Below are positions 918 through 61,944 of a stretch of 64,000 nt of DNA, one piece after another. The stretch spans positions 124,001-188,000 of the forward strand of contig CBFFRQ010000029.1 of assembly GCA_965644315.1 (NCBI GenBank), given 5' to 3'. This DNA comes from Caecitellus pseudoparvulus (Eukaryota; Protista; Bigyra: Bicosoecida). The notes beneath the pieces are model-generated. The model made no database searches. It was not told where the DNA came from and saw nothing but the letters and a program-made list of their open reading frames with translations. The position numbers and the translations under genes were made by a program. Numbering within the stretch: the first letter of the stretch is position 1; the number at the start of each line of letters is the position of its first letter.

Positions 918-1230
918 AGGAGCCAGTATCCAGCCGCTCGTCCGGCACTCAAGGGCACCTGGCTGAGGCCGTCACTTGGCCCTTCGTGCCAATTCATTTT
1001 CACTGCGTCTCCACTTCGTCGATCACATCCATTGAGGCTTCTCTAAGTTTGCTTTCCGACGCGCCGCTACCCCCCGGGGCCACGGCTTGCGTTTCACCGT
1101 CAGCAGCGAAAACGCCCCGGTGCCCTGCGCCACCCTCTGCCCCTTCCACAGCCACCGACAAGGTGCCATTTGGGCCCTTATTTTTCCGGCCCGAAACAAC
1201 GTTCCAGGCAGCCCACACTGCTAGCTTACA

Positions 1231-4200
1231 ATGGTGAGTGTCGCACGGGGCTCCCGGGACTGGCTGGGCGGCTCTTGTACAACCCGCCAATCCTGGAGCG
1301 CTCCGCACACGCAACACCGAAACGACGACGCCCCCAACCGTGCAGGGAGTGCCCAAATTCTACCGCTGGCTCTCAGAGCGCTTCCCCCTCATCAACCAGA
1401 ACATTGAGGACGACTCCCTGTTGCTGGAGTTCGACAACTTGTACATGGACCTGAATGGTGTCATCCACAATGCCAGCCATGGCAATGAAGGCATCACTCG
1501 GCGAAAAGCTGACGACACCATCGCGCGGGCGTGTTGCGCGACCATCGACGGGATCGTCAAGAAGATGCGGCCAACTCAGCTCATCTACATGGCCGTGGAC
1601 GGCTGTGCCCCTCGCGCGAAGCAGAACCAGCAACGCAGCCGCCGCACCCGATCAGCAAAAGATGCACGCGAGGCTCGTCGGGAGGCAGAAGCTGCTGGCG
1701 AGACACATGAAGATGAGGATGTCTTTGACTCCAACTGCATTACACCGGGCACGCCCTTCATGGACATGATCAACAAGGCCATGAAGCAGTTCGTCATCAA
1801 GCAGCTCAAGGAAGACCCCGCCTGGCAGGGCCGCAAGGTGATTTTCTCTGGCTCCAACGTGCCGGGAGAAGGCGAGCACAAGATCGTAGAGTTTATTCGA
1901 GGCTTGCAGTCGCAGGGCGCAGCGGCGAACCCAAACCTCCGACACTGCATGGTGGGCCTGGACGCTGACCTGATCATGCTGTCCCTGGCCATGCACCAGC
2001 CGCACTTTTCCCTGCTGCGTGAACACATCGACTTCACCTCCTTCCGTACAAACAAGAACGGAACCAAGACCAAGACCCGTCAGACCAGCGACGTCCAGTG
2101 GCAGCTCTTGCATATCGGGCTCCTGCGGGAGTACCTTGAGATTGACATGAAGCCAGACCCCGCGGCACTTGCCGGCGCCTCATTCACATACGATGGCGAA
2201 CGCGTCATCGACGACTTTGTCTTGCTCACTGTCTTGTGCGGCAATGACTTTGTGCCCCACCTGCCCTCCTTGGATATTGGCGAGGGGGCCATGGACGTGC
2301 TCATGCAGGTGTACAAGGAGCAGCTGCCTGCCATGGGCGGCTACCTCGTCGACAAGGGCACCATCAACTTCGACCGCCTGCAAGTGATGCTGGACATCGT
2401 CTCTGCGATGGAGCCTGAAGTCTTCAAGCAGCGAGCCAAGGATGCTGAGCGGTTTGCCGAGCGCCAGGCGCGCGACGGTGCCCGGGACGCCAAGTTCCGC
2501 AAACAGTGGTCCCTGACAGCACACGAGCCTGAGGACCTCGCCGAGCTGGCGGAATTGGCAGTGTCGCTCGACCCCGGGGACGGCACTGGGTCAGAGGCCT
2601 CCTCGGCTGTGGCATCAGCCTCCAGCACTGGCGGAGGTGCCGCCGGCGGCGATGCAGACTCGGACGGTGGCAGCTGGCACGGAGCTGTTGAGGAAGACAC
2701 TGGCGTTGACCCCGCTGTGCGTGCGCTCATGCCCCTCACGCCAGGGGTGTCTGCTTCCATTGCCGCCAAGGCGGCCGCGCTGGCTGCTTCGACACCTGAA
2801 TCGGACATCAAGACGCGCTACTACTACAGCAAGATGGGCATCGGGCCTGGCATTCCTGGCTCCGAGGCGGTGAAAGCCAGCATGGTCAAGGCTTTCGCTG
2901 AGGCGCTGCAGTGGGTCATGCTGTACTACTACCAGGGCGTGCCTTCATGGGGTTGGTTTTACCCGTTCCACTACGCCCCCATGACCTCAGACCTCGTGGG
3001 GCTGTCGGCGCTGGAGATCAATTTTGAGCTTGGCCAGCCGTTCAGGCCTTTCTTGCAGCTCCTCGCGACTCTCCCAGCTGACTCTGCGCAGTTCTTGCCC
3101 CGCCCTTTTCAGTGGCTGATGACCTCCCCGGACTCCCCCATCGCCGACTTCTACCCTGATGTGGACGACGTGCGACTGGACGCGAACGGGAAACGCAGCC
3201 CCTGGGAGGCTGTTACTCTCGTGCCCTTCATTGATGAGGCACGCTTGCTCGAGGCCGTAGAAGCGCACGCCCCCGACTCGTCCTTGTCAGCGTCCGAGCA
3301 GGCACGAAACCGCTCTGGTGACGTGCTCCTGCTCCAGTTCGACCCCTCCGTCAGCACAACTGCTGTCTCCGAGTCAACTGCCTTCCCTGACATCCCTCGA
3401 TGCAACGTGTCTATCCAGGAGCCGTATGTCCAGCCGGCTCTCCCGCCTGGCGTGCGCTTCAACCCGCTGCCCCCGGCTGGGTGCATCATTCCTGCCCCAG
3501 GCTATCCCACCTTGCACGCGCTGCCTTTGTCGGCGGCCTTCAAGAAGGTGAAGCTGAATATCTTCGGCTTCGGCAGTCGCAAGCACAGTACTATCCTGAC
3601 TCCGCACGGTGCTGCCGAGCCTGGCACGGCAGGGACTCACGTGCCTGTGTTTTCAACCGCCTACGCCCCTGGCACAAGTGTACAGGCCACTTCTTCGCTC
3701 ATGCCACCAGTGCCCGAGGAGGGATTCCCTCGTGATCTTTACATTGACCTGCAGCACATGGAGCTGCGGGAGGCTGCAGACGCGCTCTTGGGTCGGTGTG
3801 TGTACGTCGAGTACCCCCACTTGCGAGCTGCGCAAGTGGTGGCCGTGTCCAGCAAGGATGCCGAGGCCACATGGTACCCCTCTGGCTCCCCGCACGTTGT
3901 TGCTGCCGCACGGCACGGGGAGTCAAAGGAGGCGGCTGGAGGCACTCAGGTGATCTCTGCCTACTCCAGCCAGCAGTCCGTAAAGTGGATGCAGGATGTG
4001 CAGCAGATGTTGCAGGTGCTTGAAGCTGGAGGGCGAGGCCTGGCGCAGTGCGGTCTCTGCTTGGAGCCCCCGAAACTCGTCCTGCGCGTGCGCAAACTCG
4101 TCGGCATGTGCCGTGAGCCAAGGACAGGCGCACTCCACCGCGTGTTTGCACGGCCAGTCACTGGCAGACCGCCAGGCGACGCAGCCCTCATCGCAGGTTC

Positions 4201-6505: not shown

Positions 6506-6666
6506 GGCGCCCGAATGCACTCGCACTCCACGAGCAATACTTTGTGTCCTGTAAAACCTCCACTCAAGAACTCACCAGCCCTTGGCTGGACTTCCTTCTG
6601 AGGTGCCGACAGCAGTATCATTCGTTTGCGGGGCGTGCAAGACACGTGCGGAAGTTGCTGTTTGTC

Positions 6667-7540: not shown

Positions 7541-7551
7541 GCCATGTCTCC

Positions 7552-7559
7552 TGAATTCA
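7552..7559. terminator. Palindromic TGAATTCA: candidate shared 3'-end signal (AATTCA on both strands) of the Rac and DOCK genes
   Basis: Perfect 8-bp palindrome in the 78-nt gap between convergent stops. It matches the AAT[G/T]CA motif found after most stop codons in the window. Function is inferred. Confidence 0.55.
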
Positions 7560-7618
7560 ATGTCAACATGCTTGCTTGAAGCCTGTCGAGTACATACCGC
7601 ACTTGTCTACTGCACAGC

Positions 7619-10600
7619 TCACCGCCTGGAGGCGGCGGCTTGGGCCCCGATGACTTGGGACTCCTGGCTCATTTGCCTTGCCTGAGTGCCCTCGAAGCGC
7701 GCCTCCTCTAACGGAACGCCGAGGCCCTCTAGGCGATCACACAGCCCAGCCAGCTTCTCGCACAGGTAATCATGCAGGGGCAGCATGCTGGCGCTGCACT
7801 TCGTTGCGTGCAAGACGAGGCCTTTCCCGCACACGGTCAGCTGCTCCGAGAGCGCGTGTCGCAGCGCGGCAAGCGCAGGCGCGTCTGCATCTGATCGGGC
7901 ATCTTCACCCACCAGTTCGTGCATGTCACTTGACTGTTTGCGCTCTGGGGCACCTTCTGAGTCGCTGTCACCGGCGACGGTGTGGATGCTGTGCGTGCTG
8001 ACCACGCTGGAGCGCCAGTTGCCAATGATGCGACCATACCGTACCTTGAGTTCCTCTAGGATTTCCGGGTACGTCTCTACATAGCTGCCAGTGAGCAGGG
8101 TCTCATAGTTGGCAATGCCCCCTTGCACAGCCGCATCCAGCACTCCCTTCAACTGGCCTGTGAGGAAGTTTACGTCGGTGCCGGCAGGGGCGGCTGCCGC
8201 ACGTTGAATGGCGAAGCGCATGTCCGCCGTCTTCTCTCGCAGCACGAGAATAGCGCTGTCAAACGGAGTCATGAGCACAGTGTGGGCATGTGTCACTTGG
8301 CTGCGGCGATGCAGGTTGGGAAAGGCAGAGCTTGTCACCAGCCACGTGTACCGCACCCAGATGTCCAGCGACTCATTGCCAGTTTTGCGTACTTTGACAG
8401 GCCGCTTGCTCAAGAATACGCGCACTCGTGAGTACTCCCGCCCCTGCAGCAGAGGTCGTGGCACGTCGTCGTACTTTGACGCCTGGGCCCTGGCAGCACT
8501 CTGCACCGCTGCAAGCACTGGTCCCCACAGGGACTCCCACCGCTGGCCACCATCGGCGTCGACGGGTCGGCTGCTGCCCTGCGCATCCTGCCGCGTGGGC
8601 ACAAAAGACATGCTGGGAACGGTGACGCTAGGAAGCAGAGCGGGCGGCAAGAGCTTGAAGCCCGGGGGGAGCGCACCTTCTGAGCCATGCTCCTCCAGAC
8701 CACTCTGTACTAGTTGCAGCACACCCTCACCCATGTCCAAGCTGTCCAACCTGCTCAAACTGACCGCGCTGTGCCTTGTACCGGAGCTGACATCAGAAAC
8801 CGTTCGCTCAGCGGCTGCAGCTGCGGGCATTTGGCTGGAGCCTTCTCGAACAGAGGACAGCCCACCCCCAGAGCTAGCACCGCGAGTGGAGCGCACCATG
8901 GATGAGCGTTTGGTTGGTAGCGTTGAGGGGCTAAGCACTGATGCCCGTCGAGTAGCGCTCACAGGCTTCGCAGCACTGGGCAGAGTGGTGGGCATGCGAG
9001 TATCGCTCGCCCCGGCACAGAGCACTGAGGCGACTGCGCTGTCCAGGTCAATGTCTTGAACCAAGGCTGCTGAAGTCAACGCATGAAGCGAAAAAGCGCC
9101 AGTCTTCAGCGATGGAAGAGAGCGCAGCACGGCCAGGGTGCGGGGGTGCGCAAAGGCCTCTGCAGGAGGAGGTGGGGCAAGAAGTTGTCGGGGCGTCTGG
9201 ATGAAGGCTGGCTGGTGCGGAATCTGCGGCGGCAAAGTGTACGACTTCCATGCAACGTGAGAGGGTGGCACCATGGCCCCCGACACTCCAATCTTGCGCG
9301 CCGTCTTGCACAGAGACGCAAAGGAGGCGAATGCATGGTCAGCCTCCCCTGTCGGCCCAACACTCGCCAGCAGCCCACTTGCCCGGAGTTCAGAGGGCGG
9401 CCCGTCATGCCACTCAGGGGAGGGTTCAAGCGGGGGAACACCATAGGCAGCCAGGTGCTCCTCCACATACAAAACCGCGCCCTCAACAGCCTCTTGCTCA
9501 TGCAGGGGGGCTGGGTCCACCGCCATGACCGCAATCCTCAAGTCCCGGTGCCAAGGAAGCTCACTCACATCCAGGGCCTGCTGCGTTGTTGTTTGAACTG
9601 CAGAGATGTCATCTGCGACTCGTGCTGGTGCGCCGTCCAGGTGGCTTGCCTGCCGCAGCGGCTCAAAAGGCACCTTGATGAGGCTGGGGGCTCCAGGCGG
9701 GAGCTGCTCAGGATCCAACGCACCAGCTGCTTGGAGACTGTCTTCCGTCGCAGACATAACGGTGGCCCACTTCAGCCGAAGCTGGCGCTCAAACACTGAT
9801 ACAGCGACCGTGGAGTGTGCCCTGTACACGAATGTGCGCCCTCTCAGTGAGGGGGGGAAAGCAGCCCCTACGTACTGCACAGCATAGTGTGGGCACCGGG
9901 CACGAGCCTTGCTGCGACCAGTGGACTCCTTAGCGAGTTTTGTCACGATTGCTGACGATCTTGACAGTACGTCGGCCAAGCTGTTGTATGCCTGTCTGGT
10001 GCCGACAGCAAAATACCGGCAAGAAAGCAGGCGGGCCAGAACCAGCGCTTCCTCCCAGTCTTGGCTCCCATCAGCCAGCGCTTCAAAAGCATCGTGCAGA
10101 ATGTTGGTCACGCTGTTTCCAGCTTCCGATGTTGGTGGTGGCATGCCGCCCTCCCGTGCTGCCACCAGGTCAAGGAACAGGAGCTGGGTGAAGGCCGCCT
10201 CAGCGTGGTTCCCAACTTCTGCGTGCAGCTTGGAGAGATACTTGACATACGTCACGAACAGGTCCGTGCGGTGAGTATTGCGCAAGTACTGAATGAGCGT
10301 CAGCGCCGCCTCAGTGCGCTCCTCTTCGAAGAGGGCGGGCGGGGAGCGGGGGTATCGGTTCACAGCGCGCAGCATCCTGAAAAGTGTGCGGCACTCTGCC
10401 AAGAACTGGGCCACTTCGGGGCGCGCTAGCAATCGAAGGTGCTGGGGGTCCATGCCATGCTGATACTGGGACCCAGACGCAGAAAACAGCTGCAGGAGCA
10501 TGTTCCCTGCTTGGCCCTGCCCTTTGTCTGAGTGAATGAGGCCCACGCCAAGCACAGGGAAGGTGCCCCCCCCCACACATGCTGAGGGTGGCAGCAACAG

Positions 10601-13600
10601 CGCCCCTCCCCGTGCCACGATGGCGTCAACGGCATCAATCGTCCATCGCTCACTGATGGGGAGGGTGGTGCTGGTATCAGCTTGGGTAGACAAAGCCACC
10701 GCAAATGAGCGCCGCTGCATGCGGCGTGGGCTGCTCTTGCCAGAGGATGCTACAACCTTGACTTCAGCCCGAATGATGTCAAAAAAGACGCTCCTGGCCC
10801 ATGACGCCATAGGTTTGTGACAGGCGTGCGCCAGTTCAAGGGCTGTTGGCACAAGGAGGGGCGCCGCCGCAAGTCGCAGGCGGTGCGGCAGGTAAGAGCC
10901 ATTCCCATCTGGGCTTTGGGCGAGCACCCGTGGGCTGGCAGTGGACGGAAGGAATGCCTCCGGTGCAGGTACACATGCATCGCCCCACAGCGTCGAAAAC
11001 GAGCCCATCACGGCTTCGCGAAAGTCTGGCATGCCCATGCTGGCGAGGGTTTTGACCACGGCACGTCGCCTCACGAGCGGAAGGTTTTCGACAGTTGCCA
11101 GCGGTGAAGTCAACAATGCAATGTGCGTGCGCAACAGAGGGCGTAACAGGAAACCAGCAGCCACGTCCAGCAAGAAACATGCCGCAGGTCCCTGCTTGCC
11201 AACATGACTGTGCAGGTACAGTGAAGCGCTGGCAATGGACGCCCAGTGCAAGCCTCGCAAACAAGCCACATGAGTCGTGCATGCTGCATGCACCCATGAG
11301 GCCGGATGAGGCGGGCGGGCCAGCAGCACCTCAATTGCTCCGGCAAGCCTGCGCAGCACAGCAAGCCGCCCGGCTTCGAGCAGTCCAGCTGTCATGAAGG
11401 GGTCCAGAGGACATGAACCCTCTATGGCTGCCTGCCCTTCCTCCTCTTTGCCAAGACCGGGGCCTCTCTGGCCAGTTGCGCGCTCAGCTGCACATGCACC
11501 CTGTCCTACGAGGCCTGATGCGTGCTGGCTTACCGCACGGCACAGAGCAGGGAAGCTGCCTGAAGGCATGAGCAGGAGGAGGGAAGCCAAGGTGTCTGCT
11601 AGCCACTGGTACAGCGTGGTCTTGCAAGGCTGCACACCAAGCGCTTCTCCTGCCCCTGGAAGCACACGTTTCACGGGCTCGTCAGGTGGGGAAGGTGCAC
11701 CCTCTGCGACACTCTCAGTTTCGGACTTATCCTCTGCGTGAGACGCCTCACTCATGGTGGAAAGAACGCCCATGCTGCGAGTTGTGAAGGTGGACCAAGA
11801 CCTGCGGCTGCCCGGCACATCCTCTGGGTCCTGGGGTATCGCTTCGCTGAACGACACAGTTGCCCCTTTGGATGGTGCTGGCCCTGGTTCCGCGGCAACT
11901 TGCCCGTCACCTCGTGCAGCTTGGAGCGGGGGTTCACTCCCCTCAGAAACCGCCGGAAGCAGCTTTGCAAGTGCACCCGCGGCAAGGAGCGGCTCATCTC
12001 CCAGCTCCTTTCCGGCCCCCACAACGTTCACAAGCCCGCCAGCAAGCAGGCTCAGCTGCGCAACGTGGCCGATGCAGGCCTGGAGCAAGACAAAGCAATG
12101 CAGCAGCGGAGTCTCAACTTTCTCATGCTCTGCACTCGGAGTGCGCTGGGCAGGGTCACCCCCAAGAAAGGCAAAGCGAGCCCTTGCAGCTCTCGGGACA
12201 CGCACAGTGTCTACGTCTTCAAGTGTGGGGGGTCGGCTTGGAAGCACAAGAGCACCTGCAACCACCTTGCCAATCACAGCCGCGGACCCTTGCGGCCCAA
12301 CTGGACATGCTGCCAAGTTAACATACTGCGCTGGGGCAGCAGGAGCCAGCAGGCGTGCATGAGGCGGAGACTGCAGGCTGCCAGGGGAGTTGTGGTGTGG
12401 TGCACTGGCATCAGAAGGCGGCAAGCCACCGCCCCCCTCACCTCCCACAGCCCCAACCTCAACGATTGCACGGCTCAACTCGGGAAGCGATGTGAAGACG
12501 GCCCATGCCGCGGCTGCCAGCGGCCCAGCGGAAGGGCCGCGGGCTGGAAGAAGTGGAGGTGTGGGGGCTGGTGACTCAGCTGGGGCAGATGCCACAGCCG
12601 CAGCATGGAGCTGTGCAACCATGCGGTGCAAAATGGCTGCAGCTAGAGTTCGCTCTGCTTCGTTAGAGTTCAAATGCACCTTAGAAGTGTGCGCGGCGGC
12701 GTTCCACAGCGCTGTGCCGGCCTCCATCCCCTCACAGCCACACCTAGCCGGTCGCGGAGCAAGCTCAGGAATGCAGAGCACTTGCTGGATGCAGCTGAGC
12801 TTGGCAATGGCCAATGCAGTGGAGGCTGGTACCCAGCCACGGTACTTATACGCCAGCGGCACACTGCGCCATCGGATTGATGCACCTGCGAGGCGTTGCT
12901 TCGAAGCCGTCCCTCCACCGAGCGTCTCCAGAGGTGGGTGTGCCGAGCCCGCCAAGCCGGACAACGCAGGCACCAGGGCTCGAGGCTGAATGGCTCGCAG
13001 CAGCTTCGCACACCAGGCCTGCAACGTGCTGCAGGAAGTGACACCCAGCATGACTGTGCACAGGGGGGCGACTGCTCGCAGCGCTGCAGTTTGCAGCACT
13101 GCATGCCATGCAAGGGTCTGCACGCTCGGTGCCTTGTCACCCAGCGGCGCGACGACAGGCAGCCTGCACACACGAAGCAATGCTTGTCGTATGGCCAGCA
13201 TAGCGGCAGAGGCTGAGGCAGCTCCGCCACCAGCTGCCAGTTGAGTGTGCACGAGCAGGCGTGCGACATCTGGCAGGCAGGCCAATACGAGGACAAAAAT
13301 GGACCGACACGCAGAATCCACCTGCTGGCCCTCCAACATGGCCTCTAGCAACGCTTGCGTCCATCGCGACAGAGGCTCGGCCAGCCGCGCTGGAAACGCC
13401 CCCCTGCCCATGCAATGTCTCAATGCAAGCCTAGCAACTTGCCGTACACTCGGGGTTGCGTAAATGTGCGCCCCCGCCAAATGCATGGGAACTCGTGTTG
13501 GCGAAGGGTCCTTGCTTTCGCCAGAAGCCGAGGCACTTCCGCCAGACGTGGACCGGGCGCGTTTTCCTCGCCGGCCATCTCCAGGGAGAACGCCGCTTCG

Positions 13601-16600
13601 GAGACTAGACGCGAGTGATCCCAGAGACGGCGGTGCCTTGCATGCGACATGGGCAGCCTGGCCTTGCATGTCCTCAGTCGCAACAGCGACGTTCGGGGGC
13701 GGCTCGGACAAGCCTTGGAGGGCGCTCAGATGCGTGAGAAGCAAGGAAATGGCAGCTTTTTTCAGAGGATGCTGCAAAACACCCCCGCCTTCCACAGAAA
13801 GCGGGCCGTCGCTGGCTGAATCCATCGTGGCTGTGCTGTCTGAATCGCTGCTGGCTGAAGGGTCAGCCGCAGCCCCTGCGTGTGACTGACTCGCCTCCGC
13901 GGTGCTGCCCAGCCACACCACTAGGTCGCTGAGGTGCCTGAACATGGGCTCCAGCACTGACAGCAAAGTGGGTGCTGGCAAATCGTGCAGCGCCCACAGC
14001 GCTGCCTCGAGGTGTGGACCATCTGTGTGGGTTGACCAATCATACAGAACATGCAGTGCGGCGTTGGCTGGGCGTCGTGGTGAGTCGGAGGTCACCTCCA
14101 CAACCACGTGCTCAGCCTCCTTGACCAGCAGCAAGCTTCGATCCCTGACTGTTGCTCGGCTCCTTCGAGAAGATTCTACGGCAGGGGAGGCTGCTCGCCC
14201 TGGCAAGGGCTCAAACATGCTGCGAGCCAGGGGCGAGTCCTCGAAGCTGCCGATGTACCCTGCCAAGTTCCGACGAGCATGCCCGGCAACGCTCGGGCGC
14301 CTGCTGCCACGCCTGCTGCCACCTCCACCAATCATAGAGTCTGCTCCGTCGCCGTCCATGGACAGGCGCAAGGCGGACGCGCGGCGGTAGGGTGCAGCGG
14401 ATTTCGCGACACTCCGCTGTGCGGTGGACATGTACTGCACAGCATCAAACACGGGGAGGGTGTACGAGCCAGCCCTCATGCCGACGCGAGTCCTTGGGTG
14501 GACGAGGGGGAAGAAAGAGAAACCCACCGGGAAGGACCTGCCTTCATTGGCAGAGACGTGGTAGTAAGCCAAGCGGATGTGTAGGGAGTCTAGCAGCTCC
14601 ACAGTGGGCACGACGAGAGTTACAGCTTCGTCCCACTCGGGGTCATTGACGTGGTAATACACAGCCGAGCGGTACTCGGGAGCCAGTTTGCGGCCTTCAG
14701 CAACGACGTGTTCGTGAGGCAAGTCCGGACGGATGCGGGACCCTGCTGCTGATCGAGGGCGCGGGCCTGCTTCAGGGGCCTCACCCTGGGATGACCCAGG
14801 GCTGGCATTCGAAACGCCAACTGGTCGAGTGGCGGACATGGAGCGGCGCCTGGTGGGTTTTGCAGCGTTGTTTTCGTGCACTGCGACAGAAACGACGCCC
14901 GACCCGTCCGTGAAGTGAGCTGTGGCTGGGAATGCGCCACCGTCTGCGTCTGTGGCCGTCCCCGTGAACGCGCGAGCGACACCCTGGCCCAGGTCACGTG
15001 GCATGGCAGAACTTCCCCAGCCGACACCCCTGACCAAACAAGGAAATACGGAGCCATCACGCTTCACCGCGTGAACTCTGACTTGCAAATTCAACCCTGC
15101 CTTCTTCTTGCCTTGGCCGAAGTGACCGCGCACCAAGCGGACGCGAATGTACGACACATGCGCTCCTACACCTTGTCCGTCCGAAACAGTGGCACCTCCC
15201 ATGCCTCGCAGCAAGCTGTCCAACGAGGAGTCGCGCTCCTCACCAGCAGCGGGGGTGTGATGGAAGGAAACGGAGCCTCTCCTAGTGCGAGTGGGCGCTT
15301 GGTATCCAGCGCAGGCTTTCAACGCAAGCAATTGCTCAGACTCAATGCTGCTGTAGCGCAGAAGCCGCAGTGCGTCCTTCATCGAAGCAGCCATTCCACG
15401 CACGCACTCCCAACGCCCTTGAACTTGCGCCGCAAGTCGTTGCACATAGGATGCAGGCTGAGTCGTAGTGAGGAGCACCTGGGATGCCATGTCTGTGCCA
15501 CACAGCCGGTGGAGGACCAAGGCATGCGCTTGGAGAGTCTCAGGATGCTGCGAAAGCAGCCTACTCGACAGGCCGCTTAGCTGAGCCGTGTGCTGTAGCT
15601 GGGGGAGGGCAGCGAGGAGTTTTTCCAGTGCGGGTGAAGGCGCATCTGCTGGTGCTGGAGTGGGTGGCTCCAGGCCCCCTCCAGCGCTGCTGTGCAGCGA
15701 CCGCAGTGTCTCCAGGACGTGGTGAGCAGTGGCGCTGGCGGAGTCCTCTTGAAGGAGCGCACATGCCACACTCCACAGCCACCCCCCCACCCCAGTCCAG
15801 TCGAACATTGGTTCATCGTCCCCCACATCTGCAGGCACGATGACGTCTGTGTGCGGACGCATCAAATCACCCCCCGGATGCACCGGCAGCATGTGGGGTA
15901 GTGGCTGGGAGTCGCTGCCACCAAGGGCTGCAACCTGGTCGTGCACACCCTCATGCCCTTCGGCCAGGGCTTGCCCAGCTGCGAGGGAAGCGGCCAGACT
16001 CCTCCGCGGAGCTTTCTTCCTCGTCTGGTGGGGTGACACAGTTTGGGCTTTGAGGGCCACTTGGGGTGCTAAGGGGCTCGCTGCAAGCAGCTGCCAATGC
16101 GCGTGCTGCCGCATGCTGCCCGACAGGGGGCCACAGTGGCCACCCCATTGGGGCTGGAGCCATGGCATGAGGGCCCCCACGAGACTTGCTGGTGGTGCAT
16201 AGCTTGCAGAATTACCCGCAAGAAGCTGTTCTGTTGCATGCTGGACACTGAAGGTGGCCGCTGTACCTTCAGCGGGAAGAAGGCGGGGAGCCGGGACAAG
16301 GGGAAGGGGCGCCTTGGCGCTTGCTGATCCAGCAAGCAAGGTTTCGGGCTGAACATCGCACCATGGCAAGTCAAGAACGGCCATATCCAATGCATGGACT
16401 GCTTCCTCTTCAGTCTCTGGTGCTGCCGCGTGCCTGACAGTGGAGTGAACGCGAGACACGCGCTCGTAGCGCGCCTGGGCACCTTCCCCCCCCCACCCTG
16501 CCCCTGCTGCGTGGTTTTGAACAATGTCCTCAATGCTCTGCAGGTTCTTCGCGATGCTTCCACTGCGGGGTGCCTCCTGCTGCTCCCTGTGCAAGCCAGA

Positions 16601-18433: not shown

Positions 18434-18642
18434 TTCGACTTGCTGGGGTGCCTGGCGGGCAGGCGCCAGGCAACCTTCGCTAACGCGCTGGCTGAGGAGA
18501 CGCGCAGGTCACTGGACTACCGGGGCAAGGTGCCGTTTGGGGCAGGTGTGGTGAGGCGACGTGAGTGCACGCTGCACAGGATTTGGGACCGCGGGTGCAT
18601 TTGTAGGTTCGGTCACCTGACCTGGTTGGCACAGGAACTGCT

Positions 18643-26200: not shown

Positions 26201-26370
26201 TTCACGGTGCAGTGGTGGCGACAGGGGTGCCGCTTCGAGAGGGCAGCACTGGGGGGGGCTCAACTGGCTCCCCCGACACCCCCACGCCTGGGCGCTTGAC
26301 GCAGTGGGGTGAAGGCCCCTCCGGCTCCCCCCGTGCGCATCCGCCGCCGGGGGAGCACTCTAAGCATTGA
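23238..26370 (+). CDS. ATG11: Autophagy scaffold ATG11/RB1CC1(FIP200)-like
   Basis: Ubiquitin-like start (LQVVQAHTGQ...RVEDLLQAV, after intron 23318-23516). ATG17-like region LPTAYKAAVHEVARRR...E..RR..F...LP..LFPGM...FDQALPAID. C-terminal Claw (VAFSGFMPGRNALFL...YVAFNIGAPHHY...NPHGV..G..FF.V). Confidence 0.85.
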
Positions 26371-26375
26371 ATTCA
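26368..26375. terminator. Palindromic TGAATTCA including the ATG11 stop codon: candidate shared 3'-end signal of ATG11 and GAS8
   Basis: TGA 26368-26370 is the ATG11 stop. The 8-mer reads AATTCA on both strands, and the GAS8 stop lies 15 nt from the minus-strand copy. Function is inferred. Confidence 0.55.
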
Positions 26376-26388
26376 TTTCATGTCATGG

Positions 26389-30406: not shown

Positions 30407-30493
30407 GCGCGACAGCCGATGCTGAATGCATGCACGTTGCGAAGAGGCGGGGGGCACAGTCGTGGGTGGCTGGACATGCATTCTTCTGCCCTG

Positions 30494-30751
30494 CTAAGTG
30501 CCATCGTCCTCTGCCTCCTCCACTGCCACGAGCTCCTGGGCGCCCATGTCGCTGAAGACGCTAGTGGTGAAGGTGGGCAGGGAGGGGGGCAGCACTGGCA
30601 CGGAGTATGTGCTTGCCGCTGCAGCCAGGGTGGAAAAGCCCTGCCTCTGCTTGTGTCGGGGGTTGGAGGAGCACACCACCATGACCTTGCGGCCGCGCTT
30701 CACCACCTTGCACTTCTCGCACATCTTCTTCAAGCTGCTGCGGACCTTCAT
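30494..30751 (-). CDS. rpl36: Organellar (probably mitochondrial) ribosomal protein bL36 with C-terminal extension
   Basis: [38 protein letters not shown] is a complete Zn-ribbon bL36. It is followed by 47 extra residues. Confidence 0.92.
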
Positions 30752-31221
30752 GGCGTCCACCGGAGTCGGCCTACGCCGCTCTGTGCTCTGGGCTTGCTGC
30801 TGCCGCCGTGGGCTGGCGGCTCTATTTCCGCACTCCTGCACCAGACCCGGAATACGTCGCCGAAGGGGCCTGACTCAGCCCTTCAGCCATGCAAGGCGAT
30901 ATCTACCTGGACCTTGTGTGTGTGTGCGTGTGGTTTCCCCTTCAGATGTGCTGAGAGTGGCGCGCTACACACGCAGCTATTCAGCACCCAGAAGGGGGGA
31001 TGCGATGCCGCTTGCCCCCCCCCACGATGGAGCAGGGACAATCCACGCCAACCCGCACAGCTCCAACCCCTCACAGCTTGCCAGCGTCCTTTGTGACCGT
31101 TGCATTCACGCCTGTTGTGCTGCACCACTTCTCTGCCCCATGTGAGCCGCCTCGGGCACCTGCACCGCCATCTCCTCACACTTCGAACGGCCAACCTGCC
31201 CACACCCTCTGCACAGCCATC

Positions 31222-32076: not shown

Positions 32077-32623
32077 GGGGTCTGCACGGTGTGTGTTTCC
32101 GTGGCCCTGACACTTGGACACCTTGCTCTGGCCCAATAGCTGCACGAGAATGCACTCCTCCAAAGCTCCACGCTCTCTGCGTCCGATCGAGCTGGCCCTC
32201 CTGGTGTCATGGCCTGCAGCCGCTGTCTGCGTGGCTCGCAAACAGCGGCGTGGTGCATGATGTGAGCACGATGTGCCACATCCCAGCAGCAGCTCACCAA
32301 GCCAAAGCGGGGGGCGCTAGCCGCCACAGCACCCCGGATGGGACTCAGAGGCCCCATGTGAAGCAATTAGTCCGCTTTGCATCACTAGGTTTTGCGCCGT
32401 CGCCCACACTGCCCTCGCGCTGGGCAGCTCACGCACTCGTGCTTGCCTGCCCTCTCTCTCGCACATGCAGGTGGGGTTGCGAGCCGAGCCGCAGCGAAAG
32501 ACATGCAGAAATCCTGCCCAGTGCGACAGAGGCCGTGTCTTCACAACATGCGGCCGGCACTGGCGCACCCTCGTGTGTGCAGGGCCGCGCTCGCTTCCTG
32601 GCGCAGACGCCCAAACCGTGCAT

Positions 32624-33855
32624 TCACCTGCCGAAGTACTCTGCCGGGTCGAAATCCCCACTTGGGTGTCGGGCCTGAGAATTGGCTTGGGCAGGAGGGT
32701 GGCGGTGCCTTCCTCCCGCGGCGTGGTGCCGGTGGAACTCCCGGTCTTCCAGACGCCGCCGCAGCGCGAATTCATCCTCTGGGCTCCAGGCATCGCGCCC
32801 CGACCCGTCGTGATGCCGCCGAGGGTGGTCTGCGCCAGGTTCACCCTCGTCCACACCATGCATGTCCAGAGATGGGACGCCCAGAGCTGGAATCGGCTGC
32901 AGAGCCCAGGGCGAGTCGTCCTCCAGTGCAGCTCTGCCAGGCCCGAGGTGACTGGAGCCCTGGATCCCCCCCTGCTCCTCTTCAAAGCGCGCATGGTGGT
33001 CGTCGTGGTCATCCTGTGCCCTCCAGGGTTTCATGTCTTGCTCTGGCGTCCAGGAGCCGTCGTGCTGCTCTTGCTCGGCACCTGTCGAGGCTTGCACCTG
33101 GCCGCCGTCACCGCCAGCCCCCAGCGCAACCTGAGGCTGCCCCATCGCAAGAGGCGAGGCTGGAGGCGGCGACCGACCACCACGCAGTGCCAAGAGCAAG
33201 GGGGGAGCTGCTATGACCATGCCCTCAGCATGCCCCTCCGGCACCAGCTGCCCTGACGACGACAGCAGAGCGCTGCCGTGCTGTGCCTTGAAAGCAGCGA
33301 TCTCCGCAGCTGCCGAAAGGAATGGCGAGTCCTCATACTGCTTGCCGTACTCCTCGCGCAGTGTGGACCCGATGTCCTGCAGTGTGGGTATTGGCGGGGC
33401 GTGCACCACAGCATGGAGGCCATGCGCCAAGGCACCTCACCGCTGAAGATGCCAGCAGGCTGCCCAAGCACAAGTCCCCCGTTTTCAGAGTCATGTAATC
33501 CCACGTCAGTGAAAAGGCGAGGGAAGCCGGCAGGAGTCTGTACTGGGATGTGGCTGGGAGCCGGCGCCCAACGATGCCAAGAACTGCGCAAAGGACCACC
33601 CGCACGGCGTGAGCAAGACGAGCCACGTCGAAAGGCAGCAGGCTACACACCTCCGTACGTCACAAGAGCCATCGCCCCAGCCCCCCCCAGTTTATACCCA
33701 AACAAGTTGCGCTGGCACATGGTGTACGCTTGCTTCACGTCCACGTCAAGCCTGCGCAGAGCAACGAGCACGTGCCAACGTTTCGCTCGCGTTTCCCCCA
33801 GCCATGTTACGCACTCAGGCAGTGCTGAAGCCAGGGCTTTCCCGGCAGCCTCCAT
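32624..33855 (-). CDS. Hypothetical membrane protein with possible OCIA-like N-terminal domain and long disordered tail
   Basis: Introns 33752-33814, 33584-33650 and 33377-33440 join one frame: MEAAGKALASALPELDVDVKQAYTMCQRNLFGYKLGGAGAMALVTYGVLGIVGRRLPATSQYRLLPASLAFSLTWDYMTLKTGDLCLGSLLASSADIGSTLREEY...FDPAEYFGR. The gene model is well supported; the family call is weak. Confidence 0.6.
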
Positions 33856-34518
33856 CGCCGCATAGTGAAGGTTTGTATTAAGTGGTTTTGCGATTTCCTC
33901 GCCCTTCTGGGCGCCCTCCATGCCTGGAGCGACGCTGAAGCGGGTTCGTTTGCTGACCTGGCTCTCTGCCTGAGAAGCCACGCACGTCCGGCACGTGAGG
34001 CGAAGTTTGCGCTGCTGGAGAGCCAGCACGTCATCAAGAGTGAGCCAATTTGTGCAAAACACTTAGAAGAGTTTGAAGCGTGCTTGCTTTTGTCATCCAT
34101 TGGCACAGTGACGCTCAACTCAAAACAGTTTCAAACAGCGAGTCCTCCTTGCAGAGAGACAGCAGACCAAAGGATCCGAACATTGACTTTGTAGTTACAA
34201 GCATGCCTGGCGTAGACGTGAAGGAAATAGTCTCCTGAGTTCCAACCAAAGCTCTTGGCGGACTAGGTAGAGTGAAGGGCGTAGTTTCAACCCTTTCATC
34301 AAGAATGTAGAGCTCGTGCGTGCAAATTGCGCTCAGCAAGTGTGCAGGGGCGATTGGTCCAAGTATCGGGCACCTCTCGGACAACACGAGCAAGCTAACT
34401 TGTGAATATGTTGACAAGTTTTACATGAGCAACGATAGAGCGCCTGGAGTGCATTGGGGCCGCACGACAGCCGCTCGCGCGGAGGCAAGGGTGGGGGGGG
34501 CAGTCATTGCTAGGAAAT

Positions 34519-36001
34519 TTACATGAAGTCATCGTCATCCTCCACCTCGTAGCCACCCTCGATGAGCTCTGCGAGCTCCATGAAGTCCACCTTCCACCGC
34601 AGCAGGCCGCCAATGCCACCGAAGCCCTGCACGAATTGGGACCCCTCCTGGGACTTGTCTGAGACGAACTCCAGCTTGGTGCCGAAAGACTTGAAGTTCT
34701 GGGCCAGCCACTCCACCAGCGGCATCTTGTCTGCGACGTCCAGGTCCACACCAGTCTCAGGGTCCTGGAACAGCGCCCGCTCCTTCTCCTGATCCGGGCG
34801 GAAGTACTTCACGGTGATCTCCCCCGTGGCAGGGTTGCGCAGCTCGTACCGCTGGTCCTCCAAGTCTTCGTAGACGATGAGCGTCTCCACCGCAGACATG
34901 TCCAGCGCGTGCATGATGTCGCGCACGCCGAAGCAGTAGCAGCCCGTGTCACGGGCGATCTCATCGAAGAACTGCCCGACCAGCTTCTTCTCGGCGACAA
35001 ACTTGACGTTGGCAAGGGCCTCTGCCGACAGCTCGATGGCCTGGTTGAAGCCGTTCTCCCCACCGTACGACACGTCTACAACCTTGACGACAATGCCGGC
35101 CAGGCGGGGGTCGAAGAGATCTGACGTCTGCAGCTGGTTCTTGAACTCGGCGCTGCCGGCCAGGACGAGACCAGCCACATTGGGCTGGTCAGCAGAGATG
35201 AACGCGTTCACTGCGCTCTCAGCAACCTTGCGCACGTAGTTGTGACGCTTCTCCAGACGCAGACGCGCGAAACGCAGCGCTGACTGCCCACCGCGTCCGT
35301 GCTTCTTGGGCAGCTCCACGGAGAACTTGTGCACGACCTCGCGGTGGTTGCCGCACAGGGTGCCGAACAAGCAGCCGTTACCATCCATAACGATGAAGCC
35401 GAACTTCTTGTCGTCTTGCAGGAGGTCACCCAGGGGCTCCGTGTGGAAGCGACTGTCGCACAGGTACATGGAGGTGTTGATGGGCTTGAAAGGCTCGAAG
35501 TCGATGCTGAGCTTCTTCTCCTTGCCGTCCTCCGTCATGACTTCGCCGCAGTACACCACCAAGCCGTTGGGGGGGCACTTGCTGTACTGCTTCAGCCGGT
35601 GCTGAGCCGAGGTGATGGCAGACAGCACAGATTGCCTGCGTGGAGGCGGGCGGGGCGCAGCGTGCCTGGCCAGCTTGCGCCAGGCCGGCAGCAGAACAAA
35701 CCACGCACCTGGTGACGCGGGACTTGATGTTAGATGCCGTGCCATACTCATCCGTGAGCATTTTCGTGGTTTGTGAGATCTTCGTTGGGAGGCGGGAGCC
35801 TCAGTCAGCCGCTGCATGGCATTGGAGCGCGGCGTGGCAGGCGTGCGGAATGAGCAGGGGACTCACCTGCGTTCCTGGGGACAAGATCAATGAGATCATG
35901 CTGGTGCCGCTGCCCCGAGCCTTCTGCAGGCTGGCAATCAGCTTCTGGACCTTGAACCGCTCGATGGCGGCATCTTGGTCGTCGCCGCTGGCTGCTGCCA
36001 T
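34519..36001 (-). CDS. ERF1: Eukaryotic peptide chain release factor 1
   Basis: [63 protein letters not shown]. Introns at 35780-35866 and 35636-35708. Confidence 0.98.
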
Positions 36002-36949: not shown

Positions 36950-36959
36950 CTCCCACCCA

Positions 36960-40405: not shown

Positions 40406-40457
40406 TCAGCAGGCTCCGCTGCTCAGTGCGCCAAGACCCACAGGGGGACTAGGAAGG

Positions 40458-40465
40458 AATGCATT
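40458..40465. terminator. Palindromic AATGCATT: candidate shared 3'-end signal of the CDK-like and kinesin genes
   Basis: Perfect palindrome in the 67-nt gap between convergent stops, reading AATGCA on both strands. Function is inferred. Confidence 0.55.
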
Positions 40466-40472
40466 GGTGGCC

Positions 40473-43400: not shown

Positions 43401-44695
43401 CCGTGTGCTGTCCTCCAGTGCACGCAGCTTCCGCGCATGCTCGCTGCGCAGGTCTGACTGCTCCTGCCCTGCCTGCTGGATGCGCTCCTCGTACCCGTCC
43501 ACAGCCTCAGACAGGCTCTTGTTCTCAGCCTGCACCTTGGCCAGGGCAGTGGCTGCTTCTGCACGTGCCTCTCGCTCGGTCGCCAGCTCAGCGGTCAGCG
43601 TCGTCTGGGCCTCCCGCAGCTCACGACCCAAGGTCGTGTACTTTGCGTGCAGCGCCTCAAGCTCGGCATCCCGTGACTTCACGACGGCTGTAAGGCGGTC
43701 CAGCTCCTGCTCCAGGCTTGACGTGGAGACGCTGGTCTCATCAGCCGACTCCTTCGCGGCTGTCAGGCGCTGCTCCAGACCGTCGGCTCGGGCAACAGCC
43801 GCCGCCTTCGCCTTCTCTGCCACCTCAATGGCATCCTGGGCGCTAGCCAGCCGCTGCTCCAGGCCCAGAATCAGCTGGCGAGCTTGTGTGAGCTTCTGGC
43901 GGAGGTCCTTGGATGCGCCACGTGTGTTGGCAGCAGGACTGAAGAGCGCTGTGGTGGACTTGTACAGCTTGTTGAACGTGGCAGCCGCAGAGGCGGTGAT
44001 GGAGCCAGCGGGGGAGGCAAAACCTGGAATGGTGCTGGGGGTGCCTTGGACAGTGTCCATATTCACAACTTGCTTTGGTGTTGAGCGTGCTGCGACAGCG
44101 GGGGTCGGATGGCGGGAGGTTGTGACAGCTGTGTCAGGAGCGCAAGCGGAGCAAGCGTTGACGCACTGTCCACGCTGACACTGGGGTCCTTTTCGCGGAG
44201 GTTCTCGTGCATCCAGCGCAGGGCTGCAGCAAGTTTGACAGTGTTCTTCTCTTGGACCACGACGGCGTTGGGGATCATGTCCCCTGGCATGCCCAGCTCC
44301 TGGCAAGCCTGGCTAAACCTGCGGAAGCCGTTGCGGAAATTGTGCACACCTGGCTCTGGTGACACGTGCCTAGCCCTGGGCACCAGGGCGGGCGACTGCG
44401 GGGTGACCACGCACTCTATAAAGTTTTGTGCACGTGGAACCTTGTTTGGCGTCCGGCTGAGGGTGCGTCCATGAGACTTGCGGATGCCGTGGAGCTGTGC
44501 CAGGTGCCGCGCGGCGCGAAGGAGGACACTGCCGTCCTCCAAGCTCTGCACGAGCTCAGGCACGCTGGCCGCGTCAGCGATGCTCTCATCAGCCATGCTG
44601 ATGGAGAATGCACGCAGGGCTCGCAAGATGTCTTGGGAAGCCCCTTCACTGGACAGCAGCCCGGTTCTTCCCGGGGTAGTTGGCGCAGCTGCCAT
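40473..44695 (-). CDS. Kinesin-14 with N-terminal calponin-homology domain and internal motor (KCH-like architecture)
   Basis: CH-like ELVQSLEDGSVLL...AQNFIEFSQACQELGMP...EKNTVKLAAALRWM is joined by introns 44319-44414 and 44090-44166 to a coiled coil. Then come the kinesin-14 neck ERRRVFNQLQELRGNIRVFCRVRP, GQTGSGKT, NEHSSRSH, LVDLAGSE and HVPFRNSKLT, a second coiled coil and a basic tail. Confidence 0.9.
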
Positions 44696-58077: not shown

Positions 58078-58375
58078 TGGGCAACCGCCCAGCCGAGCAA
58101 ATACACTGTCTCAGTAAATCCCAGCACACCACACCCTGTGCTCAGCTTGTGCAGCTCTGTGGGCTGCCATACTTTCCAGGATTTCACTCCCCGGCCTCGT
58201 CCGTCAGGGTCTGGCGCTTGTCTGGAAGGCAGAGTCGTCGCTTGCGACGAGCGCTGTGCCAAGCGCTGCTTTGCCACCGGTCCGTGCGCGGCACCCTGGC
58301 AGGCTCCGAGGCGCAAGGTGCGGAAGAGGGCATTGGAGTGGCTGACAAGGCCGCGTCAACCCCCCCTGCTCAAGC

Positions 58376-60676
58376 ATGGCAGTGCCTAACCCGCCCCACT
58401 TGGACATGTTCACCGAGCCAGGCAGTGCGCTGCTCAAGCTCTCTCCCTTCCTGAAGCACTTGTACAGCATGCTGGAGCTGCCTGACAGCGACCCGAGCAT
58501 CATGTGCTGGTTGGCGAGCGGGAATGGCTTCTTAGTGCTCGACCGCACCCGACTGTGCAGTGACGTGCGTGATTCCGTGTGTTGCGTGCCAAGGTGCAGC
58601 GCTGCCAGCCGCCCCGCTGACGCCGCGGTTGGGGCGAGCCAATGCCTCACACGTGGGCTCCCTGGGCTTCCTAGGCTGGGCGGTCTGGCTGCAGCTGTCA
58701 CCATTTCTCGCGATGTTCCCTGCGTGATGCACGGCTGAGCGCGCCAGCCTCCCTTCTGCCACCATGCGGTCGACCGTGGCAACTGCCCTTTCCCGTGCCA
58801 CCGCCCAATCGGCTGCGCGCACCGCCGACGCAGCAGCAGTCACCATGCACTGCATTCTCCGTGAGGGCCACAGGTGCTACCGAAGTATGTCAAGACGCGC
58901 AATTACAGCTCGTTTCTCCGTCAGGTGCGTGCGCCGGGCCTGTGAGCGTTTGGCTCCGCCCAGCCCACATCTCTCAGTGTCATGGCATCGCCTCCACACA
59001 AAGCAGATGTTGCTGCGCAGCCCCTCACTCGCCACGCAACCTTCCTCACAGGTGTCCTTCTATCAGTGCGTGTTGCATGGCCCTCATCCTGTGCCCGCTG
59101 CAGGCAGTGTGCAGCGACTACTGCAGCAGCGAGCCAACGCTTGCCTGGCAGCCTCTGCTCCTCACTTACACTTTGTCACGAGTGCGCTGGCCCGCACTCT
59201 CGCCGCACTTGCGCTGCACCAGGTTCCGAAAGGTGCCCAATGCCGACCTGACCGTGGATGACCTTCCAGATGAGCTCTGCAAGGCGCTTCTCAAGCGTGC
59301 AGTGGAAACTGCAGGTGCGAGGCACGCCCACCACATCACTTCCGCACGCGGCTGCTCCCTTCTGCAGCCTGCTCAAGGCGGCAGCCCAGCACGGTACACC
59401 CCCCCCCTCCCCGCCCGCAGACCAAGCAGGCACCGACACCAGCTCCCCACAAGCTGCAGTGGACAGTGGGGACGTGTTCAAGATGCGGGAGTACTTGACC
59501 CGCACAAGCCTTGTGAGGGACATTCTCAGCGCAGCTGATGTCTTTCGGCACGACGATTTCCTGCGGCGAGATCCGTCAGCACTGTTGAGGATCACGCGCA
59601 GAGTGCCCCAGAAGCGGCAATACTCGGCGACAGGCAACAGGGCCGGCGTGGGGTCAGCTCAGGGCCGCCACTCGCCTCGCTCGCCAACCAGCGCGGGGTC
59701 CGTGCCAGGCATGCACAGTGCCTTCCAAGGGCCATATGCACCCCCCCCTCCGCCTTCCTATGCAACCCCCCTGCCACACCCTGGGAGCATGCCTCCCGGT
59801 GCAGCACAAGGCTTTACGTCCTTCCGATACGTGCGCCCTCCACCGCCCGGCGCACCTGGGCCGCAATCCTCCGCTGGTACATTGTCAGCGCCCGTGCTGC
59901 TCCCCCACACCAGCAATGCCGCGTCAGGTCCGACTGGCAGCTGGCAAGAGAGTGTGACAACCCACACCGGGTATTCCTCCGCCGCCATGGCAGCGGCAGG
60001 CGCGCTGTCAGGCCTGGCGAGTGGGCACACGTCCGCGCCTCGCCCGCGGTATTGGTCCCCCACTGCCTCGGACATGCCTTCTTCAGGCACTGATAGCACG
60101 GGTTCCCCCCGGTCGGGGGCTGCCGGTGGCAAGGCTGGCGACTTTTCCCACCTCGGCGGCAGCGTGAACAGCCTTTCCCCTCGAGCCAACCTGCCAGCCT
60201 TGCAGCCCAGTGGACCGTACGCTGCTCACCCCCCGGTGCTTGGAGCGCACCAGGGGGGCCCTGTGCAGTCCGGTATGGCAGGTGCCGCCTTCTTCCCCTC
60301 CATGGACAACAGCTACTCCCCCCGCCAAGGTGGTGCCATGCTGCAGACGTCCCCCCGCATGGTGCCCCTCGGAGCCAGCGCCTCTCCTCGCCACCGCCCA
60401 GGCAGCACCTCTCCCCGTGCCTTCATGTCTGAGCCCAGCTACTCGCCCAGGCTTATCGTGGGGCAGGGCGGGGAGCGGCCAGGGTCTCCTGGGCCTCTAC
60501 CGCCAGGCACAGTGGCCTTGCTTCCGGACTACGTCAACGCAGAGTCTCCCCGAGCTCTGCATGTGGCGCCAACACGCAGTGGCAGCGAGGGGCGCTCCAC
60601 CTCCCCTCGGCCGGCCGCCGTGCATGCCGCCCACGGTTCTGAGTTCAAGGGCGCGGCACAGCCTGTGTCGCTGTGA
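58376..60676 (+). CDS. HSF-type DNA-binding transcription factor
   Basis: Exons 58376-58564, 58874-58924, 59052-59065, 59223-59314 and 59421-60676 give PFLKHLYSML...IMCWLASGNGFLV.D...VLPKYVKTRNYSSFLRQVSFYQFRKV...FRHDDFLRRDPSALLRITRR, then a Ser/Pro-rich tail. Confidence 0.88.
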
Positions 60677-60773
60677 GAGTCGGCCAGCGCCACCCCCCCC
60701 CCTGTGTGATTTTACCTCCCCTGCAGTGCCAGCGTAAGGCACTCGTCACCAGAGCGCAGCCAGCACAACAGCG

Positions 60774-60783
60774 CAATGCATTG
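60774..60783. terminator. Palindromic CAATGCATTG: candidate shared 3'-end signal of the HSF and RSPH9 genes
   Basis: Perfect 10-bp palindrome within gcgcaatgcattgtgc, in the 137-nt gap between convergent stops. Function is inferred. Confidence 0.55.
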
Positions 60784-60813
60784 TGCAGGCCCACGTGCAG
60801 TTGCGCAGCCCGG

Positions 60814-61821
60814 CTACAGCATGAATGCCAGATCCTCGTTGGGGAAGCCGTCGCCAAAGTAAGCCCCGCCGAACTCGCTCGTGCCCAGCGTGTGGCTGAA
60901 GAAGTAGCCTGGCCAGGCCAGGGAGCGCAGGGTTGCGCTGCCCGTGCCAGCGTCCACCCGCAGCACCCACGTGCCCTTGGGGCTGTCTGTCGCGATGCTG
61001 TCCAGGAAGTCTGTGCTGGCCACGAGGCCGTCCTTGGAGGCGGCGGCGGCGGCCTCCAGCCCCTCCGCGGCCCGAAAGTGGAAGTAGTTTGAGGGAGACG
61101 CCGCCTCCGTGGCGGTGAGCCCACCGAAAGTGGCGTTGCGCACGGTCGCGTGCGTCGCCGTGAGGATGTACGCGCCGCGGGGCACGACAGCGGTGTCGTG
61201 GTCAATGCAGCTAACCACGTGGGCGAGCCTGTGCAGCTCGCTGAACTTCACGGGCTTGGGCGGCTTGGCCTCAGCGCCCTCCTCCTCCTCGTCAAAATCT
61301 TCGTCCTCCTCCTCTTCTTCCTCTGTTCACACGGTGGGGGTGTCGCGAGGGTGAAGCAGGAGCACGGGCAGCTTGCCCAGCACCAGGCCAGCTCTCACCT
61401 TCGCCGTACAGGTTGGTGGGGTCGCCTTTGAACTTGCCCTTGATGGCTGCGGCTTGTGCCTTGAACTCCTCGCTCAGCTCAGGCAGTTGCTGTAGGTCGA
61501 ACGTGCCCGTGGAGCTGCACGCAGCGGCGTGGCGCAGAGTGCGAGCAGGCAGCACTTTGCGCGATCTCGCCACGATGCCGCGCCAAGTTCCGCAACTTAC
61601 CACGCGAAGAAGCGCTTGTGGGGGAAGCCCTCAATATCCACAACTGCATATGCAACCAAGTAGTCTCGCTCTGAGCCGGTGATGCGGCCCCAGAACTTGA
61701 CATCCGAGACGCCTTCTTCCAAGCGCCGCTTCGCCAGCGCCACCTCCAGGCCAGCAGCTTCCTCGACGCTGAGGGTGTTGCCGCTGAAGGCCAGATTGCC
61801 CAGGCCTGCGATGGAGGCCAT
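60814..61821 (-). CDS. RSPH9: Radial spoke head protein 9
   Basis: SG.TLSVEE.AGL...VKFWGRITGSERDYLVA, F.GDP, E..RL..VV..ID.DTAVVPRGAY, YFHFR, DFLDSIATD.PKG.W, LRSLAWPGYFF.H...G..YFGDG..N.DLAFML. Introns at 61515-61600 and 61323-61398. Confidence 0.93.
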
Positions 61822-61944
61822 GCTGCCGTGGGCGACACGTGAATTGCGCTGCACTGGCAGTTCAAGGTGGCTGGATCGCGCTGAAGCTGCCTGCAGAGTT
61901 CGACAGAGGAATGGATTTGCCAGGCCGTGGGGCGTGCCGCACCC

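Follow-up and report, generated by a model that had tools for sequence, protein, structure and literature searches.

The hexamer AAUGCA is very probably the polyadenylation signal of Caecitellus pseudoparvulus, with AAUUCA in second place and AAUACA, AAUCCA, and AAUGUA as minor forms. The DNA in question is a 64-kb stretch of its genome (positions 124001-188000 of contig 29, C29; hereafter the window), taken from an assembly of 30.6 Mb in 215 contigs. The window has a GC content of 64% and is laid out as long, intron-poor open reading frames (ORFs) on alternating strands, with very short spacers between the genes. The original prediction, made from the letters of the window, had read AAT(G/T)CA (AATKCA) as a cleavage and polyadenylation signal, and this reading is supported by the enrichment of the hexamer after stop codons, by its depletion from the sense strand of coding sequence (CDS), and by transcript 3' ends, two of them with poly(A) tails, that lie 11-14 nt downstream of it. 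We judge the hexamer to be a genuine poly(A) signal particular to its lineage; it belongs to a known type of element, in a version with a new sequence, and also has a compact two-strand form.

Hexamer frequencies after stop codons and in coding sequence

ORFs were called by codon-usage score in the window and in the adjacent 90 kb (the flank, C29:188001-278000), which together amount to 154 kb; joined coordinates run through the window and then the flank. The flank lies outside the sequence that had prompted the hexamer idea and served as an independent test set. The confident set comprised 43 ORF ends (16 in the window and 27 in the flank) and 119 kb of CDS, with spliced genes assessed by single exons. 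In a blind test, the most frequent hexamers between the stop codon and +100 nt were ranked against their genomic rate. AATGCA came first over the 154 kb, being present at 16 of 43 ends where 0.87 were expected (p = 1e-16), and it was also first in the window alone (8 of 16 ends, 0.32 expected) and in the flank alone (8 of 27 ends, 0.54 expected, p = 4e-8). The k-mer enrichment that had been proposed as a check is thus found, over 154 kb rather than the whole genome. It amounts to 18-fold for AATGCA and is not common to AATGCC, AATGCG, AATGCT, or CATGCA; AATTCA is enriched as well (6 of 43 ends, 0.34 expected), and no rival hexamer comes near the enrichment of AATGCA. Both strands of the 154 kb (308 kb of strand) hold 89 copies of AATKCA, a background of 2.9% per 100 nt that agrees with the few percent estimated in the original prediction and gives a chance expectation of ~0.6 for 20 gene ends.

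The distance from the stop codon to the hexamer ranges from -1 to ~140 nt, and the bases flanking the hexamer carry little information. Several stop codons lie within the element itself, as in TGAATTCA at 26368, TGAATGCA at 32619 on the - strand, and the TAATGCA that ends ORF 124562-126328 (joined coordinates). With a median stop-to-hexamer distance of ~35 nt, the 3' untranslated regions (UTRs) are very short, and the stop codon sometimes falls inside the signal. The canonical AATAAA is absent from the enriched hexamers. Only two copies lie in the window (22984 and 63340) and two in the flank; those in the window are both away from gene ends, as the original prediction had it.

The hexamer is also strand specific. 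At the 22 tandem gene ends a sense hexamer was present at nine and an antisense hexamer at two. Within the 119 kb of CDS there are two sense and 30 antisense copies of AATGCA, and one sense and six antisense copies of AATTCA. The CDS of DOCK (7619-18433, - strand) contains no sense copies and 11 antisense copies, all at the predicted coordinates, and the myosin CDS contains no sense copy. The hexamer would be purged from CDS because a sense copy would truncate the message. Two of the three sense AATKCA copies in CDS sit in one flank ORF (132845-133990, joined), at 133057 and 133931; the latter is 60 nt before the ORF stop and could reflect alternative polyadenylation or a mis-called ORF.

This leads to the question whether the pattern simply follows from base composition and from codon or dicodon preferences, given a genome of 64% GC whose intergenic DNA is richer in AT. 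The first null model, a synonymous-codon shuffle, leaves some room for this explanation. Sense AATGCA is observed twice against 13.1 expected, and the shuffle flags many other hexamers too, so that AATGCA is not singled out by it alone. Because many words containing TA or CG also fall far below expectation, the shuffle was regarded as too lenient and was replaced by a frame-aware maximal-order Markov null, in which pentamer counts are fixed per codon phase and which was applied to those hexamers, 3,159 in number, that were expected at least five times. Under this null, AATGCA is the single most depleted of the 3,159 hexamers (2 observed, 11.2 expected, P = 0.001), whereas AATGCC, AATGCG, AATGCT, CATGCA, and GATGCA are at expectation in sense CDS. 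The original prediction had stated beforehand that it would fall if the sense-strand depletion vanished after dicodon correction; with a correction of this type the depletion survives. Its account of antisense copies was exact for the DOCK count, but the antisense excess in CDS as a whole is weak after correction (TGCATT 30 observed, 21.4 expected, P = 0.05) and is not claimed here. Together with the recurrence of the 18-fold enrichment in the flank, its absence from the related words listed above, and the poly(A) tails that map beside the hexamer, these results largely refute the composition explanation, which is hardly credible.

Mapped RNA 3' ends

Four public RNA runs from four studies, all of them assembled contigs, were mapped on window positions 29400-35399 (6,000 nt). 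The GT..AG joints at the introns of the class-I aldolase (FBA) and NDUFA4-like genes indicate that the contigs derive from spliced RNA. In the NDUFA4-like gene, 24 A residues in run X1 and 10 in run X4 follow directly after position 32168. The tail is non-templated, since the genome beyond this position reads CACGC. For eRF1, which is encoded on the - strand, 24 T residues precede position 34438 in + strand letters in run X1, and the genome past the tail site reads TATCG; the DNA beyond both tail sites is not A-rich. The FBA contigs of runs X1 and X7 stop at 30443, 11-13 nt past the hexamer, and one of X4 stops at 30440. A JGI/Logan transcript contig of 1188 nt (L108) also stops at 30443, without a readable tail, and is perhaps the same record as the X7 contig, which has the same length. 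A further sequence (L011) stops before the hexamer and gives no poly(A) site, and two remaining gene ends within 29400-35399 lie outside the contig coverage.

In three unrelated genes, then, the 3' end lies 14 nt (NDUFA4-like), 12 nt (eRF1), and 11-13 nt (FBA) past the hexamer, which is the positional relation that a poly(A) signal had been predicted to have. On the nascent mRNA the hexamer would place endonucleolytic cleavage and poly(A) addition ~11-14 nt past its last base. Searches with exact proteins for further transcripts returned mostly DNA contigs of near-identical strains, and a search with the Rac exon found no transcript-derived protein.

Alternatively, the hexamer might be the site of an RNA-binding protein in the 3' UTR that acts on stability, export, or translation, with cleavage set by another, degenerate signal. 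An element enriched in 3' UTRs and strand specific would be expected on this explanation too, and elsewhere among eukaryotes a UGCAU core is recognized by RNA-binding proteins. However, a regulatory site should not recur in most genes across all functional classes, keep a constant distance of 11-14 nt to the cleavage site in three unrelated genes, or overlap stop codons. No other hexamer shows a comparable enrichment that could represent the separate cleavage signal, and purging from CDS fits premature cleavage better. We therefore regard a regulatory binding site as very improbable and the polyadenylation signal as the likely explanation of the mapped ends.

The RNA contigs also revealed minor differences from the window. 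At position 32137, in the 3' UTR of the NDUFA4-like gene, the window has a T and all four RNA runs an A, a non-coding strain difference or assembly error. Two runs join the aldolase intron at 29566>29643, a third joins it at 29567>29645 and has an additional A, and X1 also has variant contigs with other letters within 29566-29645; all these differences are strain variants or alternative acceptors. A near-identical marine metagenome strain (99.5%) has ~100 nt (L012, 11325-11426) in place of ~370 nt in the window (34052-34422), an indel polymorphism in the spacer just downstream of the eRF1 poly(A) site.

Palindromes shared by convergent genes

The 154 kb contain 13 convergent gene pairs, and in six of these both genes have a hexamer. 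In four of those six pairs the hexamers share four bases, forming AATGCATT at 40458 and 60775 or TGAATTCA at 7552 and 26368, and a fifth palindrome is found at 89869 (joined coordinates). Because the spacers measure tens of nucleotides, this four-base register is very unlikely to arise by chance. One such palindrome would provide the signal on both strands where genes converge. Given cleavage ~13 nt past each hexamer, convergent mRNAs are predicted to overlap by ~30 nt at the shared palindromes. Direct inspection of the window letters found every hexamer coordinate of the original prediction to be exact. Within the palindromes the + strand hexamers start at 7554, 26370, 40458, and 60775, and the - strand hexamers (TGCATT or TGAATT in + strand letters) at 7552, 26368, 40460, and 60777; the gene-end sites in the window are collected in Table 1.

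Table 1. Signal hexamers, palindromes, and mapped poly(A) sites in the window
Feature	Positions	Strand	Relation to gene ends
AATTCA	991..996	+	25 nt past stop of ORF 436-966
AATGCA	6514..6519	+	9 nt past XRN1 stop (6505)
Palindrome TGAATTCA	7552..7559	both	Common to Rac-like gene (+, stop 7540) and DOCK (-, stop 7619)
AATGCA	18596..18601	-	42 nt past histidine kinase stop
Palindrome TGAATTCA	26368..26375	both	TGA within it is the ATG11 stop codon; also serves GAS8 (-), stop 16 nt off
AATGCA	30425..30430	+	FBA gene; transcript contigs stop at 30443
AATGCA	30477..30482	-	12 nt past bL36 stop
AATGCA	32149..32154	+	NDUFA4/B12D-like gene
Last templated base before non-templated poly(A)	32168	+	NDUFA4-like; 14 nt past hexamer
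AATGCA	32619..32624	-	Overlaps stop codon (TGAATGCA) of ORF 32624-33385
AATGCA	34450..34455	-	64 nt past eRF1 stop
Last templated base before non-templated poly(A)	34438	-	eRF1 mRNA; 12 nt past hexamer
Palindrome AATGCATT	40458..40465	both	Common to kinase (+, stop 40405) and kinesin (-, stop 40473)
Variant AATACA	58100..58105	+	23 nt past myosin stop
Palindrome AATGCATT	60775..60782	both	Common to ORF 59258-60676 (+) and radial-spoke gene (-, stop 60814)
AATTCA	61840..61845	-	100 nt past stop of ORF 61945-63018; ~20 nt upstream of radial-spoke likely ATG (61821)

The palindromes raise the possibility of a DNA-level element, in which a protein, possibly dimeric, binds AATGCATT or TGAATTCA between genes and halts RNA polymerase II, acting either as a boundary element or as a terminator of the roadblock kind, with poly(A) sites nearby only as a consequence. 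Their presence at four of 13 convergent pairs, with the fifth at 89869, would suit such an element, as would the tight packing of genes, some with stops 0-2 nt apart, which demands efficient termination. Most sites are single, non-palindromic hexamers, however, and tandem ends carry them in a strand-specific manner. Purging is confined to the sense strand of CDS, 34 antisense copies being tolerated there, and the spacing to the poly(A) site is fixed. A DNA-level element is thus improbable, although slightly less so than a regulatory RNA-binding site, and the hexamer is better read as an RNA signal for polyadenylation that the palindromes present on both strands.

In convergent yeast genes, bidirectional termination zones have been described (bioRxiv 10.1101/2022.11.02.514956). 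As there, one short intergenic zone ends transcripts of both strands here, but it is an exact 8-nt palindrome of two overlapping hexamers, whereas the yeast zone is degenerate and AT-rich. The shared palindromes illustrate the degree of compaction that 3'-end signals can reach.

Two further arrangements reflect the packing of genes. Convergent flank ORFs have stops 0-2 nt apart at 65602/65603, 109629/109632, and 100456/100458 (joined), and each 3' UTR with its hexamer must consequently fall in the CDS of the opposite-strand neighbour (for example, 39 nt past the stop in the 65602/65603 pair). The - strand hexamer at 61845-61840 lies so near the likely ATG of the radial-spoke gene that cleavage is predicted almost at this ATG, and the two tandem transcripts therefore probably overlap head to tail.

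Recognition, relatives, and gene identities

In the human mPSF complex, A1 and A2 of AAUAAA contact the second zinc finger (ZF2) of CPSF30, A4 and A5 contact the third (ZF3), and U3 and A6 form a Hoogsteen pair stacked on Phe43 and Phe153 of WDR33 (PMC12421377). AAUGAA and AAUACA are weak human variants that bind mPSF at least 30-fold more weakly (PMC12421377). When AAU(G/U)CA is compared with AAUAAA, positions 1, 2, 3, and 6 are kept and only positions 4 and 5 are changed. Each of the two human variants has one of the present substitutions (G4 or C5); they are rare and weak in human, whereas the double variant is the main signal here, which implies a changed reader. The reader would be the conserved CPSF module (WDR33, CPSF30, CPSF160, and Fip1), with A1-A2 still held by ZF2, U3-A6 still held by WDR33, and the ZF3 pockets re-specified from A4-A5 to (G/U)4-C5. 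The comparison suggests the same machine with a re-specified ZF3 as the simplest model. In domain searches the genome was found to encode the CPSF73 C-terminal and Fip1 domains, and it has a CCCH_4 domain match at G000:C43:607208, in an open frame of 396 residues that is a candidate for CPSF30.

The signal resembles the canonical AAUAAA/AUUAAA read by CPSF in being a sense-strand hexamer at a short, fixed distance before cleavage, in its identical A1, A2, U3, and A6, and in having a family of single-base variants. It differs in that positions 4 and 5 are G or U followed by C, in that AAUAAA itself is unused, and in its spacing of 11-14 nt, at the short end of the canonical 10-30 nt. The G and C of the hexamer suit a 64% GC genome. 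Other protists have signals of their own, such as UGUAA in Chlamydomonas, UAAA in Trichomonas, and AGURAA in Giardia. As in these, a short motif near or over the stop codon replaces AAUAAA and the 3' UTRs are very short, but the present hexamer has a different sequence, can be recognized as AAUAAA altered at two neighbouring positions, and often serves two genes as a palindrome. AAUKCA is not known to have been described as such a signal, and full-text literature searches on the hexamer in polyadenylation and on poly(A) signals of stramenopiles or Cafeteria revealed no account of it.

Several points weigh against the assignment as a general polyadenylation signal. The claim that the hexamer marks almost every gene end holds in the window (13 of 16 ORF ends) and less well in the flank, where AATKCA lies within 120 nt at only 12 of 27 ORF ends, and in some genes, such as the SPC25-like ORF ending at 36813, no clear hexamer is present close to the end. 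The mapped 3' ends number only three and come from assembled contigs, not from raw reads. Neither CFIm25 nor the CstF64 hinge domain was detected in the genome, possibly because the sequences have diverged or are interrupted by introns. Support for a GU-rich downstream element is weak: TGTG, GTGT, or CTGT is 2.7-fold commoner 0-40 nt past 3'-end hexamers than past CDS-antisense ones, with a Fisher p of only 0.04. Recognition by CPSF, finally, is an inference. Some of the flank ends without AATKCA are internal exons and others have AATACA, AATCCA, or AATGTA; ends that lack AATKCA often have one of these variants at a like distance, and few of them lie on the sense strand of CDS too, although the counts are small.

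A wider proposal concerns the heterotrophic marine flagellate lineage to which this organism belongs, possibly including Cafeteria. ZF3 may have been re-specified in this lineage so that AAUGCA became the high-affinity hexamer, and its self-complementary core (AAUGCAUU, UGAAUUCA) may have become a two-strand signal, with convergent genes sharing 8 nt and their mRNAs overlapping. We offer this tentatively, as an account for which doubt slightly outweighs confidence. In a Cafeteria locus (L021), AATGCA lies within 66 nt of two of the four annotated gene ends, a hint that the signal may be older than this species. In a relative locus with a GC content of 63% and GAS8 at 61% identity (L113), one TAATGCA stop overlap was found, and between the convergent GAS8 and TPR genes (11222-11297) the same locus has (TA)6 instead of the hexamer, a tract that recalls the UAUAUA efficiency element of yeast. 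No use of the hexamer was seen in relative loci L109 (GC 42%) and L111 (GC 50%), and the 62 nt of visible UTR in a GAS8 transcript of 77% identity (L112) contain no hexamer. A search of JGI metagenomes with FBA found no close relatives, the best match being 69% identical and AT-rich.

Structurally, the reading of the hexamer by CPSF is known only for the human complex and AAUAAA-like variants. A main signal that differs at just the bases held by ZF3, with the four held by ZF2 and WDR33 kept, would represent a natural specificity swap, and comparison of CPSF30 with the human protein would reveal the residues that set base preference at positions 4 and 5. The hexamer offers a precise criterion by which gene ends can be annotated, both in this genome and in metagenome bins that belong to the organism, and would be a necessary part of expression constructs for it.

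Marine metagenome assemblies, Logan contigs of several cultures, and the Symbiodinium sp. KB8 assembly all contain proteins 99-100% identical to those of the window, which suggests that the organism contaminates cultures. A 20.6-kb contig filed under the last name (CAJNDU010000394.1) carries GAS8, aldolase, B12D, and eRF1 at 99-100% identity. The eRF1 protein is 99% identical to one filed under Symbiodinium sp. KB8, and among named organisms the closest eRF1 sequences are those of Bicosoecida sp. (72%) and Cafeteria (70%). CAJNDU010000394.1 most likely derives from this flagellate by contamination, and at least one published algal assembly would thus include the organism as a contaminant.

Pfam matches in the window confirmed XRN1, a hybrid histidine kinase, ATG11, GAS8/DRC4, class-I aldolase, eRF1, a protein kinase, and a kinesin, and likewise SPC25, a Ras-family (Rac) exon, and a Radial_spoke exon; the B12D/NDUFA4 identity is supported by a precomputed domain match. 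The labels PDZ, YEATS, OCIA, and HSF found no Pfam match in the window. No tRNA and no Rfam family were detected in the 64 kb. A 299-residue ORF before kinesin is without a hexamer of its own and possibly belongs to the kinesin gene, as an extension or as an exon further upstream; its last 4 nt fall within the beginning of the same-strand kinesin ORF (window 44060-44063), an overlap that is of the ATGA type in the L012 gene calls.

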